Origin: Macrostomum hystrix
Taxonomy: Eukaryota; Animalia; Platyhelminthes
DNA: 64,000 nt
NCBI GenBank assembly: GCA_950097015.1
Contig: CATNEN010000033.1
Location: forward strand, 1,922,001-1,986,000
Direction: 5' to 3'
A program made the position numbers and the translations under genes. Of this stretch, positions 20,085 through 63,144 are shown in pieces. The notes under the pieces were generated by a model. That model saw only the letters and a program-made list of their open reading frames with translations, was not told the DNA's origin and did no database searches. Position 1 is the first letter of the stretch. Each line of letters starts with the position of its first letter.

Positions 20085-20209
20085 CTGTACTAATAATGCT
20101 CACTAAAATTTTCCGGGAAAATTGCAGACTGATAAAAAGCGTCGAAGACACGTTTTTGGAGATTAGCGAATTCGGAGAAAAACGGAAAAACGGAAATCTG
20201 TGAAAAACG

Positions 20210-23200
20210 GAGATTGGTGAATTCTGAGATTGGGAATTCTGAGTTTAGGAATTCGGAGATTGGGAATTCGGAGATTGGGAATTCGGAGATTGGGAATTCG
20301 GAGATTGGTGAATTCTGAGATTGGAAATTCTGAGATTGGGAATTCTGAGTTTAGGAATTCGGAGATTGGGAATTCGGAGATTGGTGAATTCGGAGATTGG
20401 GAATTCGGAGATTGGGAATTCGGAGATTGGGAATTCTGAGTATAGGAATTCGGAGATTGGGAATTCTGAGTTTAGGAATTCGGAGATTGGGAATTCTGAG
20501 TTTAGGAATTCGGAGATTGGGAATTCTGAGTATAGGAATTCGGAGATTGGGAATTCGGAGATTGGGAATTCGGAGATTGGGAATTCGGAGATTGGGAATT
20601 CTGAGTTTAGGAATTCGGAGATTGGGAATTCTGAGTATAGGAATTCGAAGATTGGGAATTCGGAGATTGGGAATTCGGAGATTGGGAATTCTGAGTATAG
20701 GAATTCGAAGATTGGGAATTCGGAGATTGGGAATTCGGAGATTGGTGAATTCGGAGATTGGGAATTCGGAGATTGGTGAATTCGGAGATTGGTGAATTCG
20801 GAGATTGGTGAATTCGGAGATTGGTGAATTCGGAGATTGGTGAATTCGGAGATTGGTGAATTCGGAGATTGGGAATTCTGAGTTTAGGAATTCGGAGATT
20901 GGGAATTCTGAGTTTAGGAATTCGGAGATTGGGAATTCTGAGTTTAGGAATTCGGAGATTGGGAATTCTGAGTTTAGGAATTAGGAGATTGGGAATTCTG
21001 AGTATAGGAATTCGGAGATTGGGAATTCGGAGATTGGTGAATTCGGAGATTGGGAATTCGGAGATTGGGAATTCGGAGATTGGGAATTCTGAGTATAGGA
21101 ATTTGGAGATTGGGAATTCTGAGTTTAGAAATTCGGAGATTGGGAATTCTGAGTTTAGGAATTCGGAGATTGGGAATTCTGAGTTTAGGAATTCGGAGAT
21201 TGGGAATTCTGAGTTTAGGAATTCGGAGATTGGGAATTCTGAGTTTAGGAATTAGGAGATTGGGAATTCTGAGTATAGGAATTCGGAGATTGGGAATTCG
21301 GAGATTGGTGAATTCGGAGATTGGGAATTCGGAGATTGGGAATTCGGAGATTGGGAATTCTGAGTATAGGAATTCGGAGATTGGGAATTCGGAGATTGGG
21401 AATTCGGAGATTGGGAATTCGGAGATTGGGAATTCTGAGTTTAGGAATTCGGAGATTGGGAATTCTGAGTATAGGAATTCGAAGATTGGGAATTCGGAGA
21501 TTGGGACTTCGGAGATTGGGAATTCTGAGTATAGGAATTCGAAGATTGGGAATTCGGAGATTGGGAATTCGGAGATTGGTGAATTCGGAGATTGGGAATT
21601 CTGAGTTTAGGAATTCGGAGATTGGGAATTCTGAGTTTAGGAATTCGGAGATTGGGAATTCTGAGTTTAGGAATTCGGAGATTGGGAATTCTGAGTTTAG
21701 GAATTCGGAGATTGGGAATTCTGAGTTTAGGAATTCGGAGATTGGGAATTCTGAGTATAGGAATTCGAAGATTGGGAATTCGGAGATTGGGAATTCGGAG
21801 ATTGGGAATTCTGAGTATAGGAATTCGAAGATTGGGAATTCGGAGATTGGGAATTCGGAGATTGGTGAATTCGGAGATTGGGAATTCTGAGTTTAGGAAT
21901 TCGGAGATTGGGAATTCTGAGTTTAGGAATTCGGAGATTGGGAATTCTGAGTTTAGGAATTCGGAGATTGGGAATTCTGAGTTTAGGAATTCGGAGATTG
22001 GGAATTCTGAGTTTAGGAATTCGGAGATTGGGAATTCTGAGTTTAGGAATTCGGAGATTGGGAATTCTGAGTATAGGAATTCGGAGATTGGGAATTCGGA
22101 GATTGGTGAATTCGGAGATTGGGAATTCGGAGATTGGGAATTCGGAGATTGGGAATTCTGAGTATAGGAATTTGGAGATTGGGAATTCTGAGTTTAGAAA
22201 TTCGGAGATTGGGAATTCGGAGATTGGGAATTCTGAGTTTAGGAATTCGGAGATTGGGAATTCTGAGTTTAGGAATTCGGATATTGGGAATTCTGAGTTT
22301 AGGAATTCGGAGATTGGGAATTCTGAGTTTAGGAATTCGGAGATTGGGAATTCTGAGTATAGGAATTCGGAGATTGGGAATTCTGAGTTTAGGAATTCGG
22401 AGATTGGGAATTCGGAGATTGGGAATTCTGAGTTTAGGAATTCGGAGATTGGGAATTCTGAGTATAGGAATTCGAAGTTTAGGAATTCGGAGATTGGGAA
22501 TTCTGAGTATAGGAATTCGAAGATTGGGAATTCGGAGATTGGGAATTCGGAGATTGGTGAATTCGGAGATTGGGAATTCTGAGTTTAGGAATTCGGAGAT
22601 TGGGAATTCTGAGTTTAGGAATTCGGAGATTGGGAATTCTGAGTTTAGGAATTCGGAGATTGGGAATTCGGAGATTGGGAATTCTGAGTATGGGAATTCG
22701 GAGATTGGTGAATTCGGAGATTGGGAATTCGGAGATTGGTGAATTCGGAGATTGGGAATTCTGAGTTTAGGAATTCGGAGATTGGGAATTCTGAGTTTAG
22801 GAATTCGGAGATTGGGAATTCTGAGTTTAGGAATTCGGAGATTGGGAATTCTGAGTTTAGGAATTCGGAGATTGGGAATTCTGAGTTTAGGAATTCGGAG
22901 ATTGGGAATTCTGAGTATAGGAATTCGAAGATTGGGAATTCGGAGATTGGGAATTCGGAGATTGGGAATTCTGAGTATAGGAATTCGAAGATTGGGAATT
23001 CGGAGATTGGGAATTCGGAGATTGGTGAATTCGGAGATTGGGAATTCTGAGTTTAGGAATTCGGAGATTGGGAATTCTGAGTTTAGGAATTCGGAGATTG
23101 GGAATTCTGAGTTTAGGAATTCGGAGATTGGGAATTCTGAGTTTAGGAATTCGGAGATTGGGAATTCTGAGTTTAGGAATTCGGAGATTGGGAATTCTGA

Positions 23201-26200
23201 GTTTAGGAATTCGGAGATTGGGAATTCTGAGTATAGGAATTCGGAGATTGGGAATTCGGAGATTGGTGAATTCGGAGATTGGGAATTCGGAGATTGGGAA
23301 TTCGGAGATTGGGAATTCTGAGTATAGGAATTTGGAGATTGGGAATTCTGAGTTTAGAAATTCGGAGATTGGGAATTCGGAGATTGGGAATTCTGAGTTT
23401 AGGAATTCGGAGATTGGGAATTCTGAGTTTAGGAATTCGGATATTGGGAATTCTGAGTTTAGGAATTCGGAGATTGGGAATTCTGAGTTTAGGAATTCGG
23501 AGATTGGGAATTCTGAGTATAGGAATTCGGAGATTGGGAATTCTGAGTTTAGGAATTCGGAGATTGGGAATTCGGAGATTGGGAATTCTGAGTTTAGGAA
23601 TTCGGAGATTGGGAATTCTGAGTATAGGAATTCGAAGATTGGGAATTCGGAGATTGGGAATTCGGAGATTGGGAATTCTGAGTATAGGAATTCGAAGATT
23701 GGGAATTCGGAGATTGGGAATTCGGAGATTGGTGAATTCGGAGATTGGGAATTCGGAGATTGGTGAATTCGGAGATTGGTGAATTCGGAGATTGGTGAAT
23801 TCGGAGATTGGTGAATTCGGAGATTGGTGAATTCGGAGATTGGTGAATTCGGAGATTGGGAATTCTGAGTTTAGGAATTCGGAGATTGGGAATTCTGAGT
23901 TTAGGAATTCGGAGATTGGGAATTCTGAGTTTAGGAATTCGGAGATTGGGAATTCTGAGTTTAGGAATTAGGAGATTGGGAATTCTGAGTATAGGAATTC
24001 GGAGATTGGGAATTCGGAGATTGGTGAATTCGGAGATTGGGAATTCGGAGATTGGGAATTCGGAGATTGGGAATTCTGAGTATAGGAATTTGGAGATTGG
24101 GAATTCTGAGTTTAGAAATTCGGAGATTGGGAATTCTGAGTTTAGGAATTCGGAGATTGGGAATTCTGAGTTTAGGAATTCGGAGATTGGGAATTCTGAG
24201 TTTAGGAATTCGGAGATTGGGAATTCTGAGTTTAGGAATTAGGAGATTGGGAATTCTGAGTATAGGAATTCGGAGATTGGGAATTCGGAGATTGGTGAAT
24301 TCGGAGATTGGGAATTCGGAGATTGGGAATTCGGAGATTGGGAATTCTGAGTATAGGAATTCGGAGATTGGGAATTCGGAGATTGGGAATTCGGAGATTG
24401 GGAATTCGGAGATTGGGAATTCTGAGTTTAGGAATTCGGAGATTGGGAATTCTGAGTATAGGAATTCGAAGATTGGGAATTCGGAGATTGGGACTTCGGA
24501 GATTGGGAATTCTGAGTATAGGAATTCGAAGATTGGGAATTCGGAGATTGGGAATTCGGAGATTGGTGAATTCGGAGATTGGGAATTCTGAGTTTAGGAA
24601 TTCGGAGATTGGGAATTCTGAGTTTAGGAATTCGGAGATTGGGAATTCTGAGTTTAGGAATTCGGAGATTGGGAATTCTGAGTTTAGGAATTCGGAGATT
24701 GGGAATTCTGAGTTTAGGAATTCGGAGATTGGGAATTCTGAGTATAGGAATTCGAAGATTGGGAATTCGGAGATTGGGAATTCGGAGATTGGGAATTCTG
24801 AGTATAGGAATTCGAAGATTGGGAATTCGGAGATTGGGAATTCGGAGATTGGTGAATTCGGAGATTGGGAATTCTGAGTTTAGGAATTCGGAGATTGGGA
24901 ATTCTGAGTTTAGGAATTCGGAGATTGGGAATTCTGAGTTTAGGAATTCGGAGATTGGGAATTCTGAGTTTAGGAATTCGGAGATTGGGAATTCTGAGTT
25001 TAGGAATTCGGAGATTGGGAATTCTGAGTTTAGGAATTCGGAGATTGGGAATTCTGAGTATAGGAATTCGGAGATTGGGAATTCGGAGATTGGTGAATTC
25101 GGAGATTGGGAATTCGGAGATTGGGAATTCGGAGATTGGGAATTCTGAGTATAGGAATTTGGAGATTGGGAATTCTGAGTTTAGAAATTCGGAGATTGGG
25201 AATTCGGAGATTGGGAATTCTGAGTTTAGGAATTCGGAGATTGGGAATTCTGAGTTTAGGAATTCGGATATTGGGAATTCTGAGTTTAGGAATTCGGAGA
25301 TTGGGAATTCTGAGTTTAGGAATTCGGAGATTGGGAATTCTGAGTATAGGAATTCGGAGATTGGGAATTCTGAGTTTAGGAATTCGGAGATTGGGAATTC
25401 GGAGATTGGGAATTCTGAGTTTAGGAATTCGGAGATTGGGAATTCTGAGTATAGGAATTCGAAGTTTAGGAATTCGGAGATTGGGAATTCTGAGTATAGG
25501 AATTCGAAGATTGGGAATTCGGAGATTGGGAATTCGGAGATTGGTGAATTCGGAGATTGGGAATTCTGAGTTTAGGAATTCGGAGATTGGGAATTCTGAG
25601 TTTAGGAATTCGGAGATTGGGAATTCTGAGTTTAGGAATTCGGAGATTGGGAATTCGGAGATTGGGAATTCTGAGTATGGGAATTCGGAGATTGGTGAAT
25701 TCGGAGATTGGGAATTCGGAGATTGGTGAATTCGGAGATTGGGAATTCTGAGTTTAGGAATTCGGAGATTGGGAATTCTGAGTTTAGGAATTCGGAGATT
25801 GGGAATTCTGAGTTTAGGAATTCGGAGATTGGGAATTCTGAGTTTAGGAATTCGGAGATTGGGAATTCTGAGTTTAGGAATTCGGAGATTGGGAATTCTG
25901 AGTATAGGAATTCGAAGATTGGGAATTCGGAGATTGGGAATTCGGAGATTGGGAATTCTGAGTATAGGAATTCGAAGATTGGGAATTCGGAGATTGGGAA
26001 TTCGGAGATTGGTGAATTCGGAGATTGGGAATTCTGAGTTTAGGAATTCGGAGATTGGGAATTCTGAGTTTAGGAATTCGGAGATTGGGAATTCTGAGTT
26101 TAGGAATTCGGAGATTGGGAATTCTGAGTTTAGGAATTCGGAGATTGGGAATTCTGAGTTTAGGAATTCGGAGATTGGGAATTCTGAGTTTAGGAATTCG

Positions 26201-27500
26201 GAGATTGGGAATTCTGAGTATAGGAATTCGGAGATTGGGAATTCGGAGATTGGTGAATTCGGAGATTGGGAATTCGGAGATTGGGAATTCGGAGATTGGG
26301 AATTCTGAGTATAGGAATTTGGAGATTGGGAATTCTGAGTTTAGAAATTCGGAGATTGGGAATTCGGAGATTGGGAATTCTGAGTTTAGGAATTCGGAGA
26401 TTGGGAATTCTGAGTTTAGGAATTCGGATATTGGGAATTCTGAGTTTAGGAATTCGGAGATTGGGAATTCTGAGTTTAGGAATTCGGAGATTGGGAATTC
26501 TGAGTATAGGAATTCGGAGATTGGGAATTCTGAGTTTAGGAATTCGGAGATTGGGAATTCGGAGATTGGGAATTCTGAGTTTAGGAATTCGGAGATTGGG
26601 AATTCTGAGTATAGGAATTCGAAGTTTAGGAATTCGGAGATTGGGAATTCTGAGTATAGGAATTCGAAGATTGGGAATTCGGAGATTGGGAATTCGGAGA
26701 TTGGTGAATTCGGAGATTGGGAATTCTGAGTTTAGGAATTCGGAGATTGGGAATTCTGAGTTTAGGAATTCGGAGATTGGGAATTCTGAGTTTAGGAATT
26801 CGGAGATTGGGAATTCGGAGATTGGGAACTCTGAGTTTAGGAATTCGGAGATTAGTGAATTCGGAGATTGGGAATTCGGGAATTCGGAGACTGGGAATTC
26901 GGAGATTGGGAATTCGGGAATTCGGAGATTGGGAATTCGGAGATTGGGAATTCGGAGATTGGGAATTCTGAGTTTAGGAATTCAGAGATTGGGAATTCTG
27001 AGTATAGAAATTCGGAGATTGGGAATTCGGAGATTGGTGAATTCGGAGATTGGGAATTCGGAGATTGGGAATTCTGAGTTTAGGAACTCGGAGATTGGGA
27101 ATTCTGAGTTTAGGAATTCGGAGATTGGGAATTCGGAGATTGGTGAATTCGGAGATTGGGAACTCTGAGTTTAGGAATTCGGAGATTAGTGAATTCGGAG
27201 ATTGGGAATTCGGGAATTCGGAGACTGGGAATTCGGAGATTGGGAATTCGGGAATTCGGAGATTGGGAATTCGGAGATTGGGAATTCTGAGTTTAGGAAT
27301 TCGGAGATTGGGAATTCGGAGATTGGTGAATTCGGAGATTGGGAATTCGGAGATTGGGAATTCTGAGTTTAGGAATTCAGAGATTGGGAATTCTGAGTTT
27401 AGGAATTCAGAGATTGGGAATTCTGAGTTTAGGAATTCAGAGATTGGTGAATTCGGAGATTGGGAATTCGGGAATTCGGAGACTGGGGAATTCTGAGATT
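20210..27500 (+). repeat. 7.3-kb satellite of 15-bp monomers (GGGAATTCGGAGATT and variants) with higher-order repeats
   Basis: Monomer variants GGGAATTCTGAGTTTA/GTATA and GGTGAATTC. Identical ORF-track patterns recur at offsets of 286, 1160 and 2987 bp. Confidence 0.98.
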
Positions 27501-27861
27501 ATTCGCATGATAATTTGGAGCTAGCAGCTTTTAGTTTGTGAATCTGGCGGCTTGATGAATTTCAAACTTCTTTCAGAGTCTTTCAGTGTGAAAGTGACCC
27601 GCACATTGTGCCCCTTGAGTAGTGTACATGAAGTTCGCCTGAGTCATGCAAGCACTGCTAGCCAATTGTGGGTCGACAGAACAGAGCACTGCACAATGGC
27701 AATTCGCACTCAAACAATAAAAATGACAGTCTCTATTCAAAGAGACGAGTCCAATGCCAGACCAACTCAACAGCCGGCCACACTTGGTTTTGCAAAAATC
27801 TTCTTTCGCGGCGCATCCAACAACATTCAGTGCTTCCTTTCGAATGAAATTTTGTTAGAAA

Positions 27862-30800
27862 ATGACTGCAAACAGCAGAGGCAATTTGCTTCTCCTAGTT
27901 CTGGTCCAGATTTCCAACTGCTTCTGTTGGGCAGGTAAATGTGATTAACATTCTACTGCATGCTTTTTAATCATCACTAGAAGGTGAGCTCTTTAGTTCT
28001 CGAGTGAGTTCATGAGTTAATAATTGAGTCATTGAGCTATATCTATTTCGTTTTCCAGTTTGTTTCTGTTGCAAGGCGGTTCGTAGCCTGATGATTAGAC
28101 TCAGAAGGTTGGGGGTTCGATTCCCGACTCCACTGGAACAAGTTGAGTCGTTAAGCAAGAAGCTTAACCTTTAGCAATTCACCCAGCTGTTAAATGGGTG
28201 CAAGCATTAGCTGGGGTGGGTTTGGCGTCCCCCCAGTCCATGGACTGAACAGCCGTACGCAGCCTTCAGATGCGCCGCACGATAGCTGCGACTGTGCTGT
28301 CGGCTGCACATCTGGCCCAGTTTGGGCAGGTGTGATCAATTATGATAATTATTATTTTTTTTGTAGCAGACCCTTGGCCGCCGTTCGGTTTTATGTGCAA
28401 CAGCAGTGAGACATTGCACATCATCTGGCCTGTTCGATCCAATGAAAGCAGCGGCAATGCTGGCAGAAATGCTGGATTTCGGGTCTGTCTAAGCTATTAC
28501 AACAGCTATGCCGATCACTGGCACCTCATTGTACTAACCAGCTCAACCATGGTGAGGGCTTGTTTTGTTTGCAGTTTGTCAGAGACTTGCGAGATCCCGT
28601 AAAATGATACTCGAAAAACGAGCTGCTGTAGATCTATGAGGTGGAAGCTGTAGATCAATGAGGAGGAAGCTGTAGATCTATGAGGTGGAAGCTGTAGATC
28701 AATGAGGAGGAAGCTGTAGATCAATGAGGTGGAAGTTGTAGATCAATGAGGAGGAAGCTGTAGATCTATGAGGAGGAAGCTGTAGATCAATGAGGAGGAA
28801 GCTGTAGATCTATGAGGTGGAAGCTGTAGATCAATGAGGAGGAAGCTGTAGATCAATGAGGAGGAAGCTGTAGATCAATGAGGAGGAAGCTGTAGATCTA
28901 TGAGGAGGAAGCTGTAGATCAATGAGGAGGAAGCTGTAGATAAATGAGGTGGAAGCTGTAGATCAATGAGGAGGAAGCTGTAGATCAATGAGGAGGAAGC
29001 GGTAGATCTATGAGGAGGAAGCTGTAGATAAATGAGGTGCAAGCTGTAGATCAATGAGGTGGAAGCTGTAGATCAATGAGGAGGAAGCTGTAGATCAATG
29101 AGGTGGAAGTTGTAGATCAATGAGGAGGAAGCTGTAGATCAATGAGGAGGAAGCTGTAGATCAATGAGGAGGAAGCTGTAGATCTATGAGGTGGAAGCTG
29201 TAGATCAATGAGGAGGAAGCTGTAGATCAATGAGGAGAAAGCTGTAGATCAATGAGGAGGAAGCTGTAGATCAATGAGGTGGAAGCTGTAGATCAATGAG
29301 GAGGAAGCTGTAGATCAATGAGGAGGAAGCTGTAGATCAATGAGGAGGAAGCTGTAGATCAATGAGGAGGAAGCGGTAGATCTATGAGGAGGAAGCTGTA
29401 GATCAATGAGGTGGAAGCTGTAGATCAATGAGGAGGAAGCTGTAGATCAATGAGGTGGAAGCTGTAGATCAATGAGGAGGAAGCTGTAGATCAATGAGGA
29501 GGAAGCTGTAGATCAATGAGGTGGAAGCTGTAGATCAATGAGGAGGAAGCTGTAGATCTATGAGGAGGAAGCTGTAGATCTATGAGGAGGAAGCTGTAGA
29601 TCAATGAGGAGGAAGCTGTAGATCTATGAGGAGGAAGCTGTAGATCAATGAGGAGGAAGCTGTAGATCTATGAGGAGGAAGCTGTAGATCAATGAGGAGG
29701 AAGCTGTAGATTTATGAGGAGGAAGCTGTAGATCTATGAGGAGGTCCAATTAGTTAAGAATCCACTAGAATACATTAGTGAGGTGCAACATTTCTGCTTT
29801 GCTGCTTGCTTCAAGTAACCATGCTGATACTTCAGTCTACTTTAAGTTCATTGAATGGAACGCTGCAGCATGTGGCATTCAAGATCCCGTCAGAGTACAT
29901 GCGGTGCCAGTTCTTTTACAGCTGGAAGGTTAGTCCAACTGTCGATGTACTTTTGAGTATTAGATGTACAAGGGGTGCGCTCTCTGTAACTACTGTAAAT
30001 ACCGCTTGTACTTAAATCGCAGATCCAGCCGATTACACCGAAACAAATTCCTTCTTTGCTTCGCTCACCTGCTGGTGATTCGACAGAAAACTGTGCGACT
30101 TCCACACCTGCGCAGCAGTGCGAAATCGAACGTGGGTTTGCCTTAACCTTTTATAAACTGCTGTCTAAGTACACTAATTTCCCATTTTCCTCCACAGCAT
30201 TTTCTTCTTCTTCACCACCGCATTCCCTTCTTCCTCACCGCATTCCCCTCTTCCTCACCACCGCATTCCCTTCTTCCTCGCCACCGCATTCCCTTCTTCC
30301 TCACCACCGCATTCCCTTCTTCCTCGCCACCGCATTCCCTTCTTCCTCGCCACCGCATTCCCCTCTTCCTCACTACCGCATTCCCTTCTTCCTCGCCATC
30401 GCATTCCCCTCTTCCTCACCACCGCATTCCTTTCTTCCTCGCCACCGCATTCCCCTATTCCTTACCACCGCATTCCCTTCTTCCTCGCCACCGCATTCCC
30501 CTATTCCTCACGGCATTCCCTTCTTCCTCGCCACCGCATTCCCCTATTCCTTACCACCGCATTCCCTTCTGCCTCACCACCGCATTTCCCTCTTCCTCAC
30601 CATCGCATTTCCCTCTTCCTCACCGCATTCCCTTCATCCTCGCCACCGCATTCCCCTCTTCCTCACTACCGCATTCCCTTCTTCCTCGCCATCGCATTCC
30701 CCTCTTCCTCCCCGCATTCCCTTCATCCTCGCCACCGCATTCCCCTCTTCCTCACTACCGCATTCCCTTCTTCCTCGCCATCGCATTCCCCCTCTTCCTC

Positions 30801-32564
30801 ACCACCGCATTCCCTTCTTCCTCACCACCGCATTCCCTTCTTCCTCACCACCGTATTCCGCTCTTCCTCACCACCGCATTCCCTTCTTCCTCGCCACCGC
30901 ATTCCCCTCTTCCTCACTACCGCATTCCCTTCTTCCTCGCCATCGCATTCCCCTCTTCCTCATCACCGCATTCCCTTCTTCCTCACCACCGCATTCTCTT
31001 CTTCCTCACCACCGTATTCCGCTCTTCCTCACCACCGCATTCCCTTCTTCCTCGCCACCGCATTCCCCTATTCCTCACGGCATTTCCTTCTTCCTCGCCA
31101 CCGCATTCCCCTATTCCTTACCACCGCATTCCCTTCTTCCTCGCCACCGCATTCCCCTATTCCTTACCACCGCATTCCCTTCTGCCTCACCACCGCATTT
31201 CCCTCTTCCTCACCATCGCATTTCCCTCTTCCTCACCGCATTCCCTTCATCCTCGCCACCGCATTCCCCTCTTCCTCACTACCGCATTCCCTTCTTCCTC
31301 GCCATCGCATTCCCCTCTTCCTCCCCGCATTCCCTTCATCCTCGCCACCGCATTCCCCTCTTCCTCACTACCGCATTCCCTTCTTCCTCGCCATCGCATT
31401 CCCCTCTTCCTCACCACCGCATTCCCTTCTTCCTCACCACCGCATTCCCTTCTTCCTCACCACCGTATTCCGCTCTTCCTCACCACCGCATTCCCTTCTT
31501 CCTCGCCACCGCATTCCCCTCTTCCTCACTACCGCATTCCCTTCTTCCTCGCCATCGCATTCCCCTCTTCCTCATCACCGCATTCCCTTCTTCCTCACCA
31601 CCGCATTCTCTTCTTCCTCACCACCGTATTCCGCTCTTCCTCACCACCGCATTCCCTTCTTCCTCGCCACCGCATTCCCCTATTCCTCACCACCGCATTC
31701 CCTTTTTCCTCGCCACCGCATTCCCCTATTCCTCACCACCGCATTCCCTTCTTCCTCGCCACCGCATTCCCCTCTTCCTCACTACCGCATTCCCCTATTC
31801 CTCACCACCGCATTCCCTTCTTCCTCGCCACCGCATTCCCCTCTTCCTCACTACCGCATTCCCCTATTCCTCACCACCGCATTCCCTTCTTCCTCACCAC
31901 CGTATTCCCCTCTTCCTCACCACCGCATTCCCCTCTACACCTCCTCCCGATTTGGTTCCTTGTTACGAGTACATGTTTATCCCTGCGGCTCTTTTCCCAT
32001 TCATTCCGGCCATCTTAATTCAGTCGCTACATTTTTATCCGCCTTAACCCTCCTCTGCCGAATCGGCACGCAGTGGGCAGGCACAGGGGCTGCCCAGGCT
32101 GGCGTCCATCGCAGAGCAATACCCTGGACTGCCAGCCCGACCTGTCGGATCGCTCGGCTGCCAGCTACAGCTCTCTATTTGGTCGATTGTGCCGCAGTCG
32201 CAGTGCCAGCACCGTGGCTTGGTTTGCTCCAGTCGCAGCCGTGGCAGGCTGCATTCTGATAGCAGCTGCTGGGCTAGCCCTGGCTCGCGTGTTGGCAAGG
32301 CGAGAATCGAAGCGAATCAGCAAGCGCATTGCTAATGCATCACGGCCTACTGACGCTGCTAATAGCTCAGTGACCTCGCCCGCGTCCATCTTCAACCTGC
32401 TCTCTGACGGGGCCAAACTGCGCAGAGTTGTTGAGAATTACATCTGGAGAAGTCCACAGTTCATGATGAAACCGCTGCAGCAGCGGCTGGAGCAGCAGAG
32501 AACTACAAGATTTTCTTTTTTGCTGACTAATCCTGACACGGGCGAACTCTTAATGCAAGTTTGA
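27862..32564 (+). CDS. Orphan type I membrane protein, 5 exons (27862-27934, 28367-28551, 29836-29928, 30023-30131, 32074-32564), about 316 aa
   Basis: All four introns are GT..AG with compatible phases (1,0,0,1). Signal peptide MTANSRGNLLLLVLVQISNCFCWA, Cys-containing ectodomain, TM segment AVAGCILIAAAGLALARVL, cytoplasmic tail ending ..ELLMQV. Confidence 0.7.
28075..28358 (+). mobile_element. tRNA-derived SINE, family 2 (CORE-like central domain), in intron 1 of the membrane-protein gene
   Basis: B box GGTTCGATTCC, then GCAAG..CTTAAC..CACCCAGCTGTTAAATGGG resembling the CORE-SINE domain, internal palindrome CAGTCCATGGACTG, ATT tail. Other copies at 45225, 50620 and 54064. Confidence 0.75.
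28625..29745 (+). repeat. Intronic 22-bp minisatellite (GAGGAGGAAGCTGTAGATCAAT), about 50 copies
   Basis: Directly visible tandem array inside intron 2 of the 27862-32564 gene. Confidence 0.97.
30190..31940 (+). repeat. Intronic ~23-bp pyrimidine-rich minisatellite (ACCACCGCATTCCCTTCTTCCTC) with ~610-bp higher-order repeat
   Basis: Tandem array inside intron 4. Variant CCGTATTCCGCTC recurs near 30851/31463 and 31014/31624. Confidence 0.96.
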
Positions 32565-33272
32565 GCATTCTCGATTGTTTTTAAACACTTCTATAGCCTT
32601 TATTTGCACAATTTTTGCACCTTTGATTCTACAGCATAAAAATGGAGTTGCGATTTATACTTATAGTGAGAACAACCCGAATGTGCAAAAAATGTAGCAA
32701 ATGCAACGATGCAACAATAATGCAACAAATAATGGTATGCAGTGAATTGTATATATTTATGTCAGGCAATAGTCTAGTGGCCCTTAATCCCACCGGCGTG
32801 CTACGTAAGCCCTAAACTTAAAGCGCAGAATCTTTGACATCCGTCGTATTTAACTGAAAATTTTATTTTCCTTTTTTTAATATTGTGCACCTTTTCGGAT
32901 TGAAAAAACTGTGTTACAATTAAATAGTGTCACACTTAACATAACAAGCACGTCTTCTAACAGAATATTACAGCTATATTTTGTAAAATATAAGTTTTAA
33001 TAATCTGTAACTGTAATCTGTAATATTCTCTTCTATGCATCTTCTCACAACTAATAGTTCTGTCTATGGAGCTGTGTTGCCTCATAATTTCAAGGGCGCC
33101 ACAAGCATGATCCATAGACTAAAGTAGCGGGCACGGAATGCATTCCTGCCCGCGTCTAAATCATTCCTTCCCGGCACTTTAGTCCATGGAAAACTGAGAT
33201 TTTACTCTATTTTTTTAAGAAGCCGAGAGAATTCGGAGGGAGAGAATATAATTCAGGAGCGTTAACCTGAAA

Positions 33273-34065
33273 ATGATTAACTTTCAAAGAATTGCCACTG
33301 GCGATATTAGTGGCTTGGATAGTGCTGAGTTGGAGTGCGCCGAGGCGACGATCGATCAGTGGTCGGGACTGCCAATCCTGGACCTCAATGAGGTGGAGAC
33401 AAATCTGACGGATCTACGGGATCCGGAAGTTTCGTATCGTGACTTGGATGTGCAAGAGCTAGAGGACATCAAACGGCTTGAGCAATCGTCCAAGTCACCA
33501 TCCACCGTAGCGACTACTAAGAATCACGTTGATCGGTTAAAGAAATTTCTTCGAGAGAAAAACCTGCCTGACGACATCGAGAGCATGCCATTGCGCTACT
33601 TAGACGGCTATCTTCGCCTATGGTATGTTAGTCTGCGAGCGAATCCTGCGCTTGGAACGAAGACCTATGCACCGGATACGATTCGTGGCTTTCGGGCAAG
33701 CATTCAGCGATTTGTAAAGGAGACACGTGCCATTGATGTCATTGGCAACGAAGTATTCCGGCTGAGCAACGAAACCTATTCGTGTGTTCTGCGCCTTAGT
33801 TGGCCAGCTACGAGAGTGAACTTCGGGCGAACAGCCTGGATTCAGCGCGATCACGGATTCCGACATGGCCCTTCTGAAATAATATTTCACTGGACGGGAT
33901 CCAGTGCGGCTTCAGGATGAAGTGTTTTTTAATATCGTCTACCATTTCGGATTTCGAGGTCGTGAATGGATTAGGGATATGAAGTTGTCTTCACTGCAAT
34001 TCTCTGTGGTCAATAATGTGAGGTGCATTGACATGATCCAAACTGGTCGGGAGACGATTCTAATG
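33273..34065 (+). pseudogene. Crypton-type (DUF3504-like) tyrosine recombinase, fragment 1: N-terminus to first catalytic Arg
   Basis: KSPSTVATTKNHVDRLKKFLREK..YLDGYLRLWY..YAPDTIRGFRASIQRF, then after a frameshift and two stops RLQDEVFFNIVYHFGFRGREW. The C-terminal half is missing. Confidence 0.8.
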
Positions 34066-34313
34066 GCCGTGCGGCTCGCGAAATCATGGGACAACAAATT
34101 CCGCAATTAATTAGATTTATTTTACGAGCGAATTTCATATAGAACCAGCAAAAACTTCAGTACCAACAACTAAAAACCTTTCCATTCACTTCACTCACTG
34201 CTCGGCTTAAAAATATACTTCAAGAAATACAAATATCAACTTCAACAAAGCAAACCTTCACTCCAAATTTACAATTGTTTCTAACATAGTAAATGTACAG
34301 TCTGTCTGATCGC

Positions 34314-35195
34314 TCACTTCTTGGGGGTGATGTTGAAGGTACAATTTTCGTACTTGCAGTTGGCAAAGAAATTAGGTGCTTCGCCAACTGGATTGCTAAT
34401 AGCGATCATGCAGCTTGAGACAGAATTCGCACCAGAATCAGTGGCAGAAGCAGCTGATGTAGTACTGCAAGCGAGCGCTGGGTGGCCAACCGGCTGAGTA
34501 AAGGATGGTAAAGCCAATCGACGACTCATGGCTTGAGAAAGTTCCACTTTCTTCGAAAACTTGATTCTCTTGGTGTAACGATCTACACTCTCAGCCCGCT
34601 TGTGTCCCGTTACGACTTGAATGTCGGATGTGCTTACACCATCCTCAAACAGGTTTGACAACAGATGCTCGAATGTAATGGTTTGTATGACTGCGGCTGC
34701 CAAGTCCGGCTAGATCACAAAGCCGCTTCATGAAATCATTCAGTGAATTCTTACCTAGCACGAGTGTCTTGTGGTACCAGTAGCCATCGTTGTCAGCACG
34801 ATTCAGTGGCTTCGGCCAGAGACATTCAACGCCAGGTGGAATGGTAGATAGGTAGAATTCAACGGCACAATCGACCAAATAGAGAGCTGTAGCTGGCAGC
34901 CGAGCGACGCTGGGTCGCCTGGAGTCTCCACCAGGACTATGCACTTGGATGTCAATGGGTTGTCGGCCGACACAGTCTTCTCAACAGATGACTTGATGAG
35001 ATCGACGTACCTCACACCATAAAACTCGCAAATCTTCACGTCGTTATTTGTCAGTCCACGAAGCCATTCCTGCCGCGAATTCCGAATCCGTAGCACAATT
35101 TGAACAGCACCTCCATCTGTAGCCTATTTGGAGTAGACCGATCAAAGTAACGCGCGTTGGCGATTGAAATCAGCGTCTTCAATAGTATACCGACT
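34314..35195 (-). pseudogene. Crypton-type tyrosine recombinase, fragment 2: catalytic half, several frameshifts
   Basis: YFDRSTPNRLQMEVLF..GIRGR, WYHKTLVLGKNSL, TNHYIRAS (HxxR), VTGHK..VDRY, C-terminal NCTFN. Confidence 0.82.
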
Positions 35196-35203
35196 CGATA
35201 TTT

Positions 35204-36028
35204 ATGTCACTATCTTGGAGCACACACGAATTGGAGCCTGAAGATTTGGCGTTGTTGCATGCGTACTTTGACCGGAGCTCGCCACAGAAACTGCAACAGG
35301 AAGTCTTCTTTGTCCTGAGCTCGCACTTTGCCTTTCGTGGACGTGAATGGAATCGAGCGCTTGAGAAAAAAGATGTCATTCTGCGGGAATCCACCGGAGG
35401 TATGACGTGCGTTGACTTGCAGAAAGAAAAGAAAGAAAAGTGTGTGTCCGCCGATGCCCCTCGGTCCAATCGGGAGATTGGGATTTTTCCTGTGCAAGAC
35501 AAATCTGTGTGCCCAGTTGAAGGGATCAAACTGTATCTTTCGAAGCTTCCATCTGAGAACGGCTCTCTGTTTCCCAGGCCTGCCGTCAAGTGGCAGAATG
35601 GAGCATGGTATTGCCCAAAGGATGTATTGCGCAAGAACACATTGGCCAGCATGATGAAGACAATCTCGAAAGCGGCCAGGCTCTCGCGGGACTACACCAA
35701 CCATTCGATCCGCGCAACAACCATAACAAACCTGTCCTCTGCTAGATTCAGTGCCGAAGTGATTCAAACCATCTCTGGGCACAAAAAGGTGGATAGTGTT
35801 GTCCGTTATACAAAGCGGACAACGGTGGCCCAGAAGCGCGCATTGTCTTCGGCTATCACAGATAGTCTACATGCCTCTACGTCGAGCGTGGTCAGTCATC
35901 AAGCACAAGCACTCTGCGAAAAGTCATCCAGCGTTCCAACTGCCGTCACAACTATTGGCCTGCCTGATAAATCCGGCCCGACGATCGTCTTGGAGAAGAA
36001 CGGGGCTAAATGTTACGTTTATATGTGA
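35204..36028 (+). CDS. Crypton-type tyrosine recombinase, fragment 3: uninterrupted catalytic domain lacking the N-terminal domain (274 aa)
   Basis: One open frame with FRGREW (R), CPV, WY, NHSIRAT (HxxR), SGHK (H) and VVRY (Y). Confidence 0.85.
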   Translation: MSLSWSTHELEPEDLALLHAYFDRSSPQKLQQEVFFVLSSHFAFRGREWNRALEKKDVILRESTGGMTCVDLQKEKKEKCVSADAPRSNREIGIFPVQDKSVCPVEGIKLYLSKLPSENGSLFPRPAVKWQNGAWYCPKDVLRKNTLASMMKTISKAARLSRDYTNHSIRATTITNLSSARFSAEVIQTISGHKKVDSVVRYTKRTTVAQKRALSSAITDSLHASTSSVVSHQAQALCEKSSSVPTAVTTIGLPDKSGPTIVLEKNGAKCYVYM

Positions 36029-36182
36029 GTGCAAAAAGGTCGCTTTGCGAAATTAGACTTTGGCTCTGGACTCTAACTGCTTTGCTTGATGTTTTGTTTA
36101 TTTTGTTGAAATACGTTGAAATACACAATAATCCATTATCGGCCCAACTTTTCGGGCCAAAATGACATCGTCTATGGCAATA

Positions 36183-36818
36183 ATCGAATATCAGCCCGAT
36201 AGCCACGTAGTCATGGTACAATTGCACAATATTTGGGTGTAGTAGAAACGCTTTTCTTCTGATCCAGTGCCTTGACAAGCATCGCCTTGTAGGTTCTGTC
36301 AAATGAAACAAATTGATCGTTGCCTATTATCTTCAGATCACGCTTCTCCAGAAAGTACCGATGCATTGATGCACGGAAGCAAACCAAACTGCTGAAAGCA
36401 TAGGTCTTTCCATCGGCAGTCTTCAGTTGGACGAAGAACAGCCGCAAGTACGAGCACAGCTGTACCTAATTGGCATGCTCTCGATGTTGGTTGGCAGTCT
36501 CTCATCTGCTAAAAACGTTTTAAACCTTTGAATGTGTTGTTCCGTCTGCTTGGTGGTAGACTGACGCTTGCTGTCCTCCTCCACCTGTTGTAGACACTCT
36601 TGTTCATTAGAGGTCAACTCACGCAGCAGAGAAATGTCTCCAACCTTAGATGGATCACGGAGTTCCTCGTCGATGAAGTTCTCTTGATTCGCAGTAAGAC
36701 CCGTCCACTGCCCGATTGGGGTAGAATCCTCGCGGTTTACAAGACGGGTGACAAAATCCAGCTCTCCGGCAGTCAAACCGCTTATTTCGTTTTCGCGAAT
36801 CCAATCGTAGCGCAGCAT
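36183..36818 (-). pseudogene. Crypton-type tyrosine recombinase, fragment 4: N-terminal half, two frameshifts
   Basis: SKRQSTTKQTEQHIQRFKTFL..NIESMPIRY / LRLFFVQLKTADGKTYAFSSLVCFRASMHRYF..IIGNDQF / AIVP-DYVAIGLIFD is homologous to fragment 1. It stops at the GTCTATGGCAATAA motif near 36180. Confidence 0.8.
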
Positions 36819-39176
36819 AGCTCGAAATACAAAAACAAGAAAGCAATAGTAAAGAAAATCTCAGCACGCATGCAAGCTAATATAATATTTAAATTAGACT
36901 CTCTCTGCTCTTCCTCGAGAAATTTCTTGCTTTTATTTGTCTATGGTTAGAATATGTCTATGGCATAGTCTATGTCTATGGCCCCTGCACCCCAAATTAG
37001 CTAAACCAAACTATACAGTACGCAGAAATATAGTTAAAGTCGCTTGTATGAGTTTTTACCATAGACATTGACAGCGGGCGCGACAGTGGGCACGAAATGA
37101 AGTCAATGCATTGAATTGAAGGCGTTTTTGCCATAGACAGTTGCAGCGGGCGCATAATTTCATTTCGTGACCGCTGCTGGGGCTGGCTCTGTTATGCTAT
37201 AATAATCACCTATAATAATATGGATAGGCTGCTTAGGGCAGAAATTAGCGAAACGGTCGAGGCGCGTAGCATATTACTCGTACGCTTTGATACTCGGAAT
37301 TTGAGTCTAATTAAAGCATGGATTGACATTTCCGACATGTTAAAAAGAAAGAAGGCGAAACATGTTTAGTAATAAAGAGAGCAAAAAGAGCTCACTGTTG
37401 AATTATAAATATGATAAAAGACACATAGAACTATATTTTAAGTCTTCGAATCTCACAAACCAATTTTACAGATAGTCATATTTAGTTAGGTCTGATTCAA
37501 TCCGGAAAAGTTATTTTCGCACAAATTTGAAACAGATGTAGGGTACAAAAAGGCTTCTGAAACTCAATGTACTTAGCTTAACTTATACTTAACTTACGTA
37601 TATGGTAAAGTGGGTGCTTGCCTGGGCATAAAATTACAAATACTACTAATACCAATCCTAATCCGAATCCTAATATTAATTCACAGTACTATTGGTCCGC
37701 ACAAATATAACTAGGCCTATTGACATAACTCTTTAGCTCCAATAAATATAGGCCTGCATTGTTATAAAATATAAAATAAACTGTCCTAATTTTTTACATT
37801 AATAAATCAATGAATATGTAATAATTTTTTGTTATAGGGTAAACATATAAATCTTAGTGGTGCTGCATGTTAAAGTTGGAAATTGAAATGGATTGTGTGG
37901 CATAAAAATGTTTTTTTATCTGAGTCAAGAAATAGTTCTGTACAAAATAGTATAGTTATAGATTCCAAATGTTTATAGCTAAATAGCACTTAAAGCAATC
38001 CTGAAGATTCCCACATTATTTTTTATACACTTTTACAGACATTCCAACCATAGAATCATGGTTGGGCCACTAACTATCAAACAAGCTGAACTGAACTTTT
38101 TAATCTAAAAGTTGGATATAATTTTGCATCCTGTATCTGTTTTTAGAATGCTGTTTCTAGACCAAGATGCACTGTGGCCAACCCAAGTTTGCCAATAGCC
38201 TACCTTCCCTTGTCTGTAGCAAAACAGTTTTATTTAGGTAATAAAATATGTTCTTTATTATCAAATGTTTCTTGTATTTTTATGCTGTTTGCATTTTAAA
38301 TTTTCCTATATTGTTCTTTTAATTTCCTAATGCAATTTTTGCATACTCATTTAAAGCACATTTAAGGATGTGCTTTTCACTTTCAATGCACAAAATCAGA
38401 GTTGAACTGGTGAGATCAAATAGGCAAATATAGGCTGCTATGAAATAGAATCAATTGTGAGCACTGCCTTATGTCCTATCAAAAGTGGGCTAGTTGAGAC
38501 TATCTAGATGGTGTCTGTTGGATCTATACTTGTTGCCAACAATGGTCAATTATGTGCAGTTCCTTCTTCTAAGGCAGTCACATGACACTTGTTCAGTTGA
38601 TTGACATGATATATTTCTGGTGAACTAATAGCTCCTTGTCCACAATGGTTGAAGTTGAAAAGGCACTATATAGTTATTATATTTCTAATTGTTTGAGTAT
38701 ATTCTTAATTCAATGGTGCATGAAAAATAAGAATATTTAGGTCTGTTTTATATTTTTAGCCCCTTTACTCTGACTAGATATATATGGACTTAATTGGGAT
38801 CCTGTATTTATTGTTTGAATTGGTCCAATTACATTATGTTGTAGTCTATTGTGAATTTTATGCAGTCTGTGTAATTCACCAACAATCATATCTAAAATTA
38901 AACATTTAATTTAGTTTCAGTACCTAATGTCAATTGTCAATCACAGTATGGTGGAATTGTTGTTAAGTTCTAGTTATTAAATAAATTGATCATATTCTGG
39001 CCAGTACTGGGTCAGGTTTTTTCACCTTAAATCGAGATAAAAACGACTCAGTCTTACTAAGAAACTGGGTACATTTGCCCAGCTTATTGTTGCTGAACCT
39101 AATCTAATAACCACTTTGCACTTGCGAAACTTTCAGCATTCATCAGACTTTGCAGCCTTCTAAGCTGTGGCCGCTA

Positions 39177-46189: not shown

Positions 46190-46742
46190 TTAAGATATTT
46201 GATTCGTGTTTTTGAGCTTGCAAATGAATTTTGCCATAGACAGCTTGGGTGTGGACATATTTGATTCGTGTTATTGAGCTGGCAAATGAATTTTACCATA
46301 GACAGCTTGCGTGTGGACATATTTGATTCGTGTTATTGAGCTGGCAAAAGAATTTTACCATAGACAGCTTGCGTGTGGACATATTTGATTCGTGTTATTG
46401 AGCTGGCAAATGAATTTTACCATAGACAGCTTGCGTGTGGACATATTTGATTCGTGTTATTGAGCTGGCAAATGAATTTTACCATAGACAGCTTGCGTGT
46501 GGACATATTTGATTCGTGTTATTGAGCTGGCAAATGAATTTTACCATAGACAGCTTGCGTGTGGACATATTTGATTCGTGTTATTGAGCTGGCAAATGAA
46601 TTTTACCATAGACAGCTTGCGTGTGGACATATTTGATTCGTGTTATTGAGCTGGCAAATGAATTTTACCATAGACAGCTTGCGTGTGGACATATTTGATT
46701 CGTGTTATTGAGCTGGCAAAAGAATTTTGCCGTAGACAGCTT
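46190..46742 (+). repeat. 62-bp minisatellite, about 9 copies, just 3' of the p85 stop
   Basis: CATATTTGATTCGTGTTATTGAGCTGGCAAATGAATTTTACCATAGACAGCTTGCGTGTGGA. GATTCGTG recurs at 46201, 46263, 46325 and onward. Confidence 0.96.
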
Positions 46743-61760: not shown

Positions 61761-63144
61761 ATGAATCCATGCTCAAAATTTATGCTTATCTGCTGGTGTT
61801 TTGTTTTGCAATCAGTCCTAAAAACAGACTGGCTGGCTGCCTACATCGATCACCCTCAAACTGCAGCCAATTAAACCTGCCACAGAAAATGAATTCCACT
61901 GAGCAATGTAGAGAGCCTGGCACTTGCTGTCACAGCTAAGACCTGTGATTTCCTTTGGCAAATCAAAATCCCTCTGGGCTTTAAGACAGACAGACCCATC
62001 AATTGAAAAGGCAAGAATCTCATAACTTTAGTCTCCATGTAAAACGGAACAAAAAGGGAGCCTCACAGTGATATCACCTGCACAATTCTCTCTCACTAGC
62101 TGGCCTGAAGAATCAGCAACAAAAGTTTTAGTGTTGGAGCACAATGCAATAAATCTAGGATTGCCTAGACTTTCCAGCTCACCAGACTGGAATAAACATA
62201 ATCCAACAATCATATGTACAAAAACATTCAAGACACAATAGTTTTGATGACTATAGTTGGTTGTAGTGTCTCAAACAAACTTTTCTTGTACAACACTTAA
62301 GCATGCAGATAACGCCTATGCCATATCTATCCATAGTGTGGATCATGTAGTGCAGACAAGAATTTTCCTGTGTGTATTTTCAGAAGTGGCATGCAGTGGT
62401 GTACAAATTGGTCAGTGGCCTGCATAATGCACACTACATAATTACACTGGCATGGCAATGTTGCCAATGCATTTATGCATGCAGCAAAAAACATATTCAA
62501 CTTTTTTTTAAATCTATTGTATATTAACAGTATAAATAGAGAAACAAAAATTAACATTTGTCTCCACTTGATTTGTGTTGCCTATGGATGAGTTAGCTCT
62601 ATGTAGCAATGTATGCAGTGCGCTGCACGTGGCCTACATCTTGAATGTGCATTGACTTCCAAGTTGCAGGTACTGCTTGACTGTTTTCACCTGCCTGTGA
62701 CCAGTCACTTTACAGATATTGGCATTTGAGTAACCAACATCAGAAAACTCCTTGCAGAGCTATTGCTGCGGCTGCCTCATGGAATGGTTGGAGCAGCAAA
62801 TCAAACATGTCGACACCGGTGACGCCCATCTGAAGTGGTCCCAGACCCTCTGACTTGGCCACCAGCTGGAACACGTCCATGGCGGCAAGAAGGTCGCTGC
62901 TGTTAGCGGCCTGATTATGCGAACATCCGATGGGATTCCAATTGCTCTAACAGACATTTGACATTGTTCTAAAATAAGAAAATGCAATGAAATTTACAGA
63001 ATTTTATCATGTAGTCTAAAAATTTACTGCAACATGCTAACAAAATATGTGTTAAATTATATTCACCTCATTGAAATTGGAAGGAAATCCATGGAAGTAA
63101 AGACGAAAATTTTCAAAGTCGTTTCTGAAATATTTGTTTTTATA

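Follow-up and report, generated by a model that had tools for sequence, protein, structure and literature searches.

The four tyrosine recombinase (YR) pieces in the window (the whole 64-kb stretch of Macrostomum hystrix DNA that was analysed) are very probably a pile-up of three Crypton DNA transposons with one DUF3504-type YR each, in which a copy called C is nested in another, BD, and a third, A, lies alongside. Read from left to right, A, BD and C give the order N-terminal part (+), C-terminal half (-), C-terminal half (+), N-terminal half (-) without forming a functional unit. A multi-recombinase unit at the locus is not supported, and with this the candidate for an undescribed multi-recombinase system is removed, the pattern being ordinary transposon nesting. 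All three are inactive copies, as there are stops or frameshifts in A and BD and the N-terminal domain is absent from C.

The four pieces, A to D, are homologous and lie at 33.1-37.2 kb, and all were present in the order and orientation that the preliminary description had given for Crypton-type recombinases. By tblastn, A and D share 35-39% of their amino acids (E 3e-21) and B and C share 41-57% (E 7e-23), while the tail of A is 37% identical to C over 70 residues and 42% identical to B over 33 residues. When numbered along P0005, a full-length homologue of 471 aa, A covers residues 1 to about 257-270, B runs from residue ~190/198 to the end, C from residue 189 to the end, and D covers residues 1-189. 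The observation that three pieces break at nearly the same protein position therefore held for B, C and D (all at about residue 189-198). It had also been stated that all four overlap at the (I/L)xxxD..YFD linker, which was not borne out, as D stops at KYCAI just before the linker and does not overlap with B; in five reference proteins, too, the end of D and the start of B meet without overlap.

B (34317-35179, minus strand; placed by frames, tblastn and the X10 contig) is the C-terminal, catalytic half, and D (36219-36818, minus strand; placed by tblastn, frames and contigs) the N-terminal half with a QRICH1-like domain region, of one old, frameshifted Crypton gene, BD, which occupies about 34.06-37.19 kb on the minus strand. 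They had been counted among four distinct paralogs. A single contig of depth 8 from a related organism, organism B (X10, 1147 bp; run type guessed as DNA, orthology of the site assumed), covers 34434-35179 and goes straight on at 36219-36623, skipping 1039 nt, and therefore B and D are two halves of one gene. Four letters at this joint are ambiguous, corresponding to the CAAT present at both borders. The D frame of the window, read across the joint, gives KYCAI-EDADF, in agreement with the pattern I-E-x-x-D-[LM] of the family. In trees, D and C each grouped with P0001, and a position of B within that clade was not rejected (p-AU 0.30), which is compatible with BD as a single gene.

The other parts of BD could be assigned on both sides of this gene. 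The AT-rich spacer at 34055-34316 is most likely its 3' flank on the minus strand, including the stop codon, since contigs link 34204 with the coding part of B at a depth of ~89 in X1, level with the B and D contigs. The spacer contains CAATTG at 34272, the only other such site in BD besides the insertion site of C. B has at least three frameshifts, which were confirmed by X1 contigs without gaps, and a 45-bp foreign patch at 34863-34907, with its HxxR and GH..RY motifs still readable; in spite of the frameshifts, BD retains IRGR, NHYIR and GHKRAESVDRY. D has a single frameshift, at 36460, and its frame enters the inserted C element and stops there (..KYCAI VP*). The QRICH1 domain is present in the relatives P0009 and P0016. 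The 5' leader of BD (36819-37185, minus strand), recognised by its motifs, repeats and fold, has GTCTATGG/CCATAGAC motifs at five places, a 38-nt sequence that is repeated directly (37044-37081 and 37116-37153) and a long hairpin at 37084-37176 (fold z = -3.1).

C, which runs on the strand opposite to BD, is inserted in it and represents a younger Crypton family that has other, full-length copies elsewhere; this 1039-bp insertion (35180-36218, plus strand) was delimited by the organism B joint, family contigs and Pfam. It is bordered by the direct repeat CAAT at 35180-35183 and 36219-36222, of which the uninterrupted form keeps one copy, and such a repeat bounding C is the known signature of Crypton integration. 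C entered at the palindrome CAATTG in the BD codons KYCAI|E, which belong to the linker that connects the N-terminal domain with the catalytic one. The repeat is followed by 46 nt (35184-35229) in which the ATG at 35204 lies, then by the YR from residue 189 onwards (35230-36025), complete in its catalytic residues. The 3' flank (36029-36218) includes a weak hairpin at 36141-36158 and GTCTATGG at 36170-36177, 41 nt before the end of the element, which terminates in ...GGTACAAT; an X6 contig stops at 36222. In Pfam, C scored 34.2 bits against DUF3504 (PF12012; cut-off 29.7) and 35.7 bits against Phage_integrase (PF00589; cut-off 27.1, E 9.8e-9). Its first catalytic Arg is in FRGREW, and its NHSIR and GH..RY align with HQLR and GH..IY of the XerC-like 4a8e. 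Full-length relatives have PF12012, some of them together with a QRICH1 domain. The C-family contigs, in four of four runs, diverge from the window exactly at 35230 and continue as ..GGYRA|LEPEDL into the N-terminal part, therefore full-length copies of C exist.

Cryptons have terminal direct repeats of 4-6 bp as recombination substrates, and deletion derivatives of them arise (PMC3212892). For one active Crypton with the end CACCG, the target is CAYCG; it is excised cleanly, and it leaves behind truncated copies, and rearrangements, at sites that resemble the target (PMC9977147). C probably arrived by the usual Crypton route, in which the recombinase exchanges strands between a short core, located at the element end or at a circle junction, and a target with an identical tetranucleotide. 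The leader and the N-terminal half of C would have been lost after arrival, or before. Against this reading, the cut of C coincides with the point homologous to its landing site in BD, for which nesting gives no explanation, as it gives none for the 46-nt stretch. This stretch was considered as filler from nearby sequence and rejected, as shared 7-mers were at chance level (13% of shuffles). Inverted-repeat arms at a putative circle junction (..AGTCATGGTA CAAT AGTATACCGACT..) were likewise rejected, their score being equalled by 13% of shuffles.

A is an internal fragment of another, third Crypton family (33069-34054, plus strand; placed by tblastn and contigs), cut at both ends and lying tail-to-tail with the 3' flank of BD. 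It has a 204-nt leader with CCATAGAC at 33112-33119 and a palindrome at 33127-33153 (fold z = -4.1). Its YR gene, starting with the ATG at 33273, reaches about residue 257 and takes in the N-terminal domain and the first part of the catalytic domain, where the first Arg, in FRGREW, is the sole catalytic residue left. The copy is dead, as it has one extra nucleotide, at 33802, and is interrupted by stop codons at 33817 and 33880; the A-family contigs read CGA and CAA in place of the TGA and TAA of the window, and the extra nucleotide is missing from them. They extend differently from the window before 33069 (X1) and past 34054 (X1, X2 and X10). Homology of A past 34054, which in some references reaches 34107, was weak and unlike the family contigs, and was taken as chance. 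At the left border, a GTCTATGG motif lies at 33062-33069 (plus strand), only its last letter, 33069, being within the A-family contig match; 33069 is the first position matching these contigs, and contigs have loose ends there. Among the contigs listed, none bridged the junctions 33068/33069 and 34054/34055.

A and C are both 97-98% like the contigs of their families, which go on as ordinary full-length genes past the break points in the window (C in four of four runs, A in three of them) and in several runs part from the window where the pieces end. In X1, contig depth, which is a rough guide and not copy number, was ~71-89 for B and D, 380-440 for A, ~790 for C and ~3900 for the 3' end module of C. 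The A- and C-family contigs are 5-10 times deeper than those of B and D, again without this being copy number, and the BD contigs have the lowest depth in the stretch. The missing halves of A and C were not found in the 64-kb window when it was searched for the continuing 30-mers from the contigs. No GTCTATGG was found in the contigs of relatives, therefore the motif is specific to the lineage of this genome.

The YR pieces and their short flanks occupy 33.07-37.19 kb, the remaining ORFs of which had no Pfam match. DIRS and Ngaro recombinases are without DUF3504 similarity, and the reverse transcriptase or RNase H that stands beside the recombinase in those elements had no match and no room in 33.07-37.19 kb. 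An Rfam search of 30-41 kb gave nothing, and self-alignment of the region against the window brought up nothing beyond a repeat of 45 bp and the 8-nt motif.

It is possible, though unlikely, that the YR of this clade works at a CAAT/ATTG core which lies within the conserved A-[I/L]-E codons of Crypton recombinase genes, so that Cryptons enter or break there preferentially; this would be an addition to nested insertion, not a replacement for it. The entry point of C in BD is GCA ATT G(AA), and the cut in C lies at GC(A TTG) GAG; these positions are homologous to within 1 nt and have one tetranucleotide in common. A match of position is expected by chance at ~0.2-1%. An active Crypton recombines its own end with target-like sites in cis, producing inversions and truncated copies (PMC9977147), and in relatives from other organisms a second Crypton YR gene is often 1 kb or less away. 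However, this is a single case, singled out by an earlier reader for the coincidence itself, and BD without the insert offers 23 CAAT/ATTG sites and two CAATTG. The cuts of A are elsewhere than the KYxA[I/L]E linker, the partial homologues of other organisms show no recurrent start at the linker, neighbouring Crypton genes in relatives sit beside genes and not inside them, and the 46-nt stretch between the core and the cut of C is unlike a clean site-specific event. The proposal that Cryptons target one another stands in a weak form, in so far as one Crypton is inside the YR gene of another and Crypton genes of relatives in other organisms often adjoin further Crypton genes, and a real site preference is at most a possibility. 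That the recombinase recognises this core as held by the conserved linker codons, and that Cryptons home into and cut each other there, is rather improbable. If true, it would give transposons an inbuilt means to disable resident competitors and would explain Crypton pile-ups. The locus thereby offers a hint, open to testing, of possible recombinase action at sites within Crypton genes.

A chimeric join of repeat copies during assembly is very improbable. Further copies of the A and C families elsewhere invite misjoins, and the borders at 33069 and 34054 are unbridged, but short-read contigs of X1 and X2 bridge both 35179/35180 and 36218/36219 with 0-2 differences (an X2 contig at 36169-36578 spans the latter) and also confirm the frameshifts of B and D. 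The source sample may itself be X1.

In RIT elements (recombinase in trio), inverted repeats enclose three intact genes, which share one orientation, represent three fixed subfamilies and are mobile as a unit. A composite element of this kind, in which the four genes would be one mobile unit reduced by deletions, had been proposed, and is hardly credible here. The closeness of several YR genes is shared with the bacterial trios, and both outer borders have similar leaders, GTCTATGG motifs and hairpins in inverted orientation. However, the outer leaders are unalignable past the 8-nt motif, and no alignable or shared terminal repeats were found. An insertion has divided a single gene into B and D, full-length single genes of the A and C families apparently stand beside other neighbours elsewhere, and the window lacks the missing halves. 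Unlike RIT, the locus consists of three unrelated broken insertions in mixed orientation, each apparently present on its own elsewhere.

A single gene made of D and C, its C-terminal half inverted when the linker site recombined with the 3' end, would explain why the last residue of D is exactly where C begins, why the 3' flank of C adjoins D and why both group with P0001, but it is just as hard to credit and is ruled out by the contigs: upstream of 35230 the C-family contigs read GGYRA, in DNA quite unlike the ..TTPKYCA of D, the depth of D is ~1/10 of that of C, organism B joins D to B, the flanking CAAT is direct and not inverted, and no contig has the flipped form. Nor did any contig show the opposite orientation at 35180 or 36218 that an invertible, shufflon-like switch would give, although rare forms can escape contigs.

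The three elements resemble those of CryptonA type. Each has a single YR gene, which is similar to DUF3504 and Phage_integrase and QRICH1-like in its N-terminal region, while reverse transcriptase and long terminal repeats are absent; a short direct repeat at the insertion borders and deletion derivatives are further shared features (PMC3212892). A border repeat equal to the target was found for C, as CAAT. Unlike catalogued CryptonA, the families found here are uncatalogued, with unnamed best protein matches of at most 47% identity, and their ends have reiterated GTCTATGG motifs and hairpins. The flatworm phylum is not in the list of Kojima and Jurka from 2011 (PMC3212892), and uncatalogued Crypton families are reported here from a flatworm genome. 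CryptonF-1_cRei of Chlamydomonas, from group F, was the first Crypton seen moving (PMC9977147). The locus is like it in that the element end equals the target motif (CACCG/CAYCG there, CAAT here), the empty site retains one motif copy, and truncated copies or rearrangements occur at target-like sites. It belongs to another Crypton group, and everything about it is read from static sequence and contigs, whereas the activity of CryptonF-1_cRei was watched (PMC9977147). The ends of animal Cryptons are difficult to delimit, and few cases like this one are available, in which the insertion is clean, the core is the 4-bp CAAT and there is an apparent empty site.

By ORF listing and self-tblastn, four tyrosine recombinase pieces were found at 33.1-37.2 kb. 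Piece A (33273-34107, plus strand) is an N-terminal part, piece B (35179-34317, minus strand) a C-terminal part spread over four frames, piece C (35204-36028, plus strand) an open C-terminal part of 274 aa, and piece D (36818-36220, minus strand) an N-terminal part with one frameshift. In self-tblastn, identity was 35-39% between A and D and 41-57% between B and C. Piece C was above the Pfam cut-offs for both DUF3504 and Phage_integrase, and its HxxR and GH..Y motifs aligned with their counterparts in a XerC-like recombinase. A word search retrieved 27 relatives (best identity 47%), several of them full-length proteins of 450-478 aa with the same two domains, and a QRICH1 domain was matched in the N-terminal part of two. 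The preliminary description of four homologous, Crypton-type pieces was thereby borne out. The locus is not a multi-recombinase system; it consists of three ordinary Crypton copies, all dead, one nested in another and one adjoining, and the alternating order simply results from this nesting and adjacency. The Crypton families at this locus are uncatalogued, and no paper on Cryptons in Macrostomum was found.

Contigs from four public sequencing runs were placed on 32900-37300: X1 and X2 (organism A), X6 (organism A, a separate study) and X10 (organism B). A 1147-bp organism B contig covers 34434-35179 and resumes with the next letter at 36219-36623, the joint omitting 1039 nt with four ambiguous letters, CAAT, found at both 35180-35183 and 36219-36222. 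In this contig B and D adjoin directly and are therefore halves of one minus-strand gene (BD), rather than two of four distinct recombinases as had been claimed. The stretch 35180-36218, bearing C on the opposite strand, is an insertion with a 4-bp direct repeat at its borders; the insertion, these borders and the apparent empty site are observed facts. In the window sequence, the frame of D read across the joint gives KYCAI-EDADF, matching the family pattern I-E-x-x-D-[LM], with a frameshift a few codons downstream. The insertion site is a CAATTG palindrome, of which BD has just two. The B/C and C/D junctions are spanned by X1 and X2 contigs, in which the frameshifts of B and D are also present, without gaps. 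Among the matches listed, no contig bridges the border at 33069 or that at 34054. The ends of the 1039-nt gap do not resemble those of an intron, GT..AG being absent on both strands at all five possible cuts.

The tree results are compatible with BD being one gene that shares a clade with the C family. D clustered with the relative P0001 in the N-terminal tree (SH-aLRT 87) and C did so in the C-terminal tree (SH-aLRT 97), where B was a long branch placed elsewhere; grouping B with P0001 and C was not rejected by the AU test (p = 0.30). A was placed in a different clade.

A and C come from families other than that of BD. Piece C was matched at about 98% by contigs from all four runs, which part from the window exactly at 35230, continuing ..GGYRA-LEPEDL across this point. 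They read on past 35230, so there are full-length C-family genes elsewhere, and their DNA upstream of it is dissimilar to that of D. A-family contigs match 33069-34054 at 97-98% and extend beyond both ends, unlike the window; the extra nt at 33802 of the window copy is missing from them, and the window stops at 33817 (TGA) and 33880 (TAA) are CGA and CAA. The 30-mers continuing both families beyond the breaks are absent throughout the 64-kb window, so the missing halves of A and C have not moved nearby. In X1, contigs on B and D had a depth of about 71-89, those on A 380-440 and those on C about 790, against about 3900 for the final 90 nt of C; these values serve only as a rough guide, since contig depth does not measure copy number. 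The 3'-terminal ~90 nt of the C element (36134-36280: hairpin, GTCTATGG, ..CCCGATAGCC..), at ~50x the X1 contig depth of B/D, seem to be a 3' module common to many elements.

When mapped on full-length references (P0005 numbering), A and D start at residue 1, A running to about 257-270 and D to 189; B and C reach the end, B from about 190/198 and C from 189. D ends in ..TTPKYCAI, and the homology of C begins at (E)LEPEDL. On this mapping three breaks do fall at one position, as first described; the overlap of all four pieces at the linker does not hold for D and B. The cut in C is the ATTG of GC(A TTG) GAG and its entry point into BD the ATTG of GCA (ATT G)AA, the two being homologous within 1 nt. 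The chance of this coincidence is about 0.2-1%, for a finding selected for this very feature. A recombinase acting on CAAT/ATTG cores would make both the cut and the entry into BD likelier. The cuts of A fall elsewhere, and none of the partial homologues elsewhere begins at the linker cut point.

Crypton borders bear 4-6 bp direct repeats, deletion derivatives are known, and integration is thought to proceed by recombinase exchange of a short core, located at the element end, with an identical target (PMC3212892). An active Chlamydomonas Crypton (terminus CACCG, target CAYCG) excises cleanly and, at sites resembling its target, generates truncated copies and inversions (PMC9977147). The C element, located at CAAT, terminates in ..GGTACAAT, and a short, high-depth X6 contig stops at 36222, consistent with the border of a repeat at that position. 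C most likely entered BD by recombinase-mediated exchange, its leader and N-terminal half presumably being lost before or after insertion. The ATG of the "intact" C ORF lies in the 46 nt at 35184-35229, for which two structural ideas were no better than shuffles.

Contigs from other organisms that carry the relative P0004 frequently include a second gene for a Crypton recombinase no more than 1 kb away, tandem or convergent, and therefore Crypton clustering seems general. These neighbours lie beside genes and not inside them. In four metagenome and Logan contigs with P0004, a different second Crypton recombinase gene was 0.5-0.8 kb away, lying upstream and tandem in three of them (L001, L003, L005) and downstream and convergent in the fourth (L002).

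The window contains 18 copies of GTCTATGG (1.4 expected), with hairpins alongside; the motif is present in the leader of A, in that of BD and 41 nt short of the 3' end of C, and absent from the relatives' contigs from other organisms. A 62-bp tandem repeat at 46195-46742 (8.8 copies; also 47095) has a unit containing TTTTACCATAGACAG, the same module as BD's leader, with 15 nt identical to 37126-37140, and appears to be a satellite derived from a Crypton end module. An X1 contig links 37147 and 37261 on opposite strands, suggesting a fold-back or inverted variant at the outer edge of the BD leader.

X1 and X2 contigs also connect 34233 to 34666 via 9 other letters (CATGACAAC). The X2 contig diverges from the window past 34094 and 34812, running there into sequence containing TGTCTATGG; the joint is a deletion allele or a second, rearranged B-like copy. 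A 45-bp stretch is found, inverted and 100% identical, at 34863-34907, where it breaks the B frame between ..ETPGDPA and DCAVEF, and 2.7 kb away at 32150-32194, inside an ORF (32073-32564) resembling a small membrane protein. An X6 contig contains the stretch as it stands at 32150, including the flanks of that copy, and in the dead B gene the stretch looks like a short patch copied in by templated repair.

Directly upstream, 20208-31936 holds three long satellite arrays, with 481 copies of a 15-bp unit (GC skew about 0.68), 51 of a 22-bp unit and 77 of a 23-bp unit; the 23-bp array gives a spurious 663-aa ORF. A weak additional recombinase fragment lies at 62664-62792 (minus strand), matching residues 357-396 of the relative P0007 (37%, E 2e-4).
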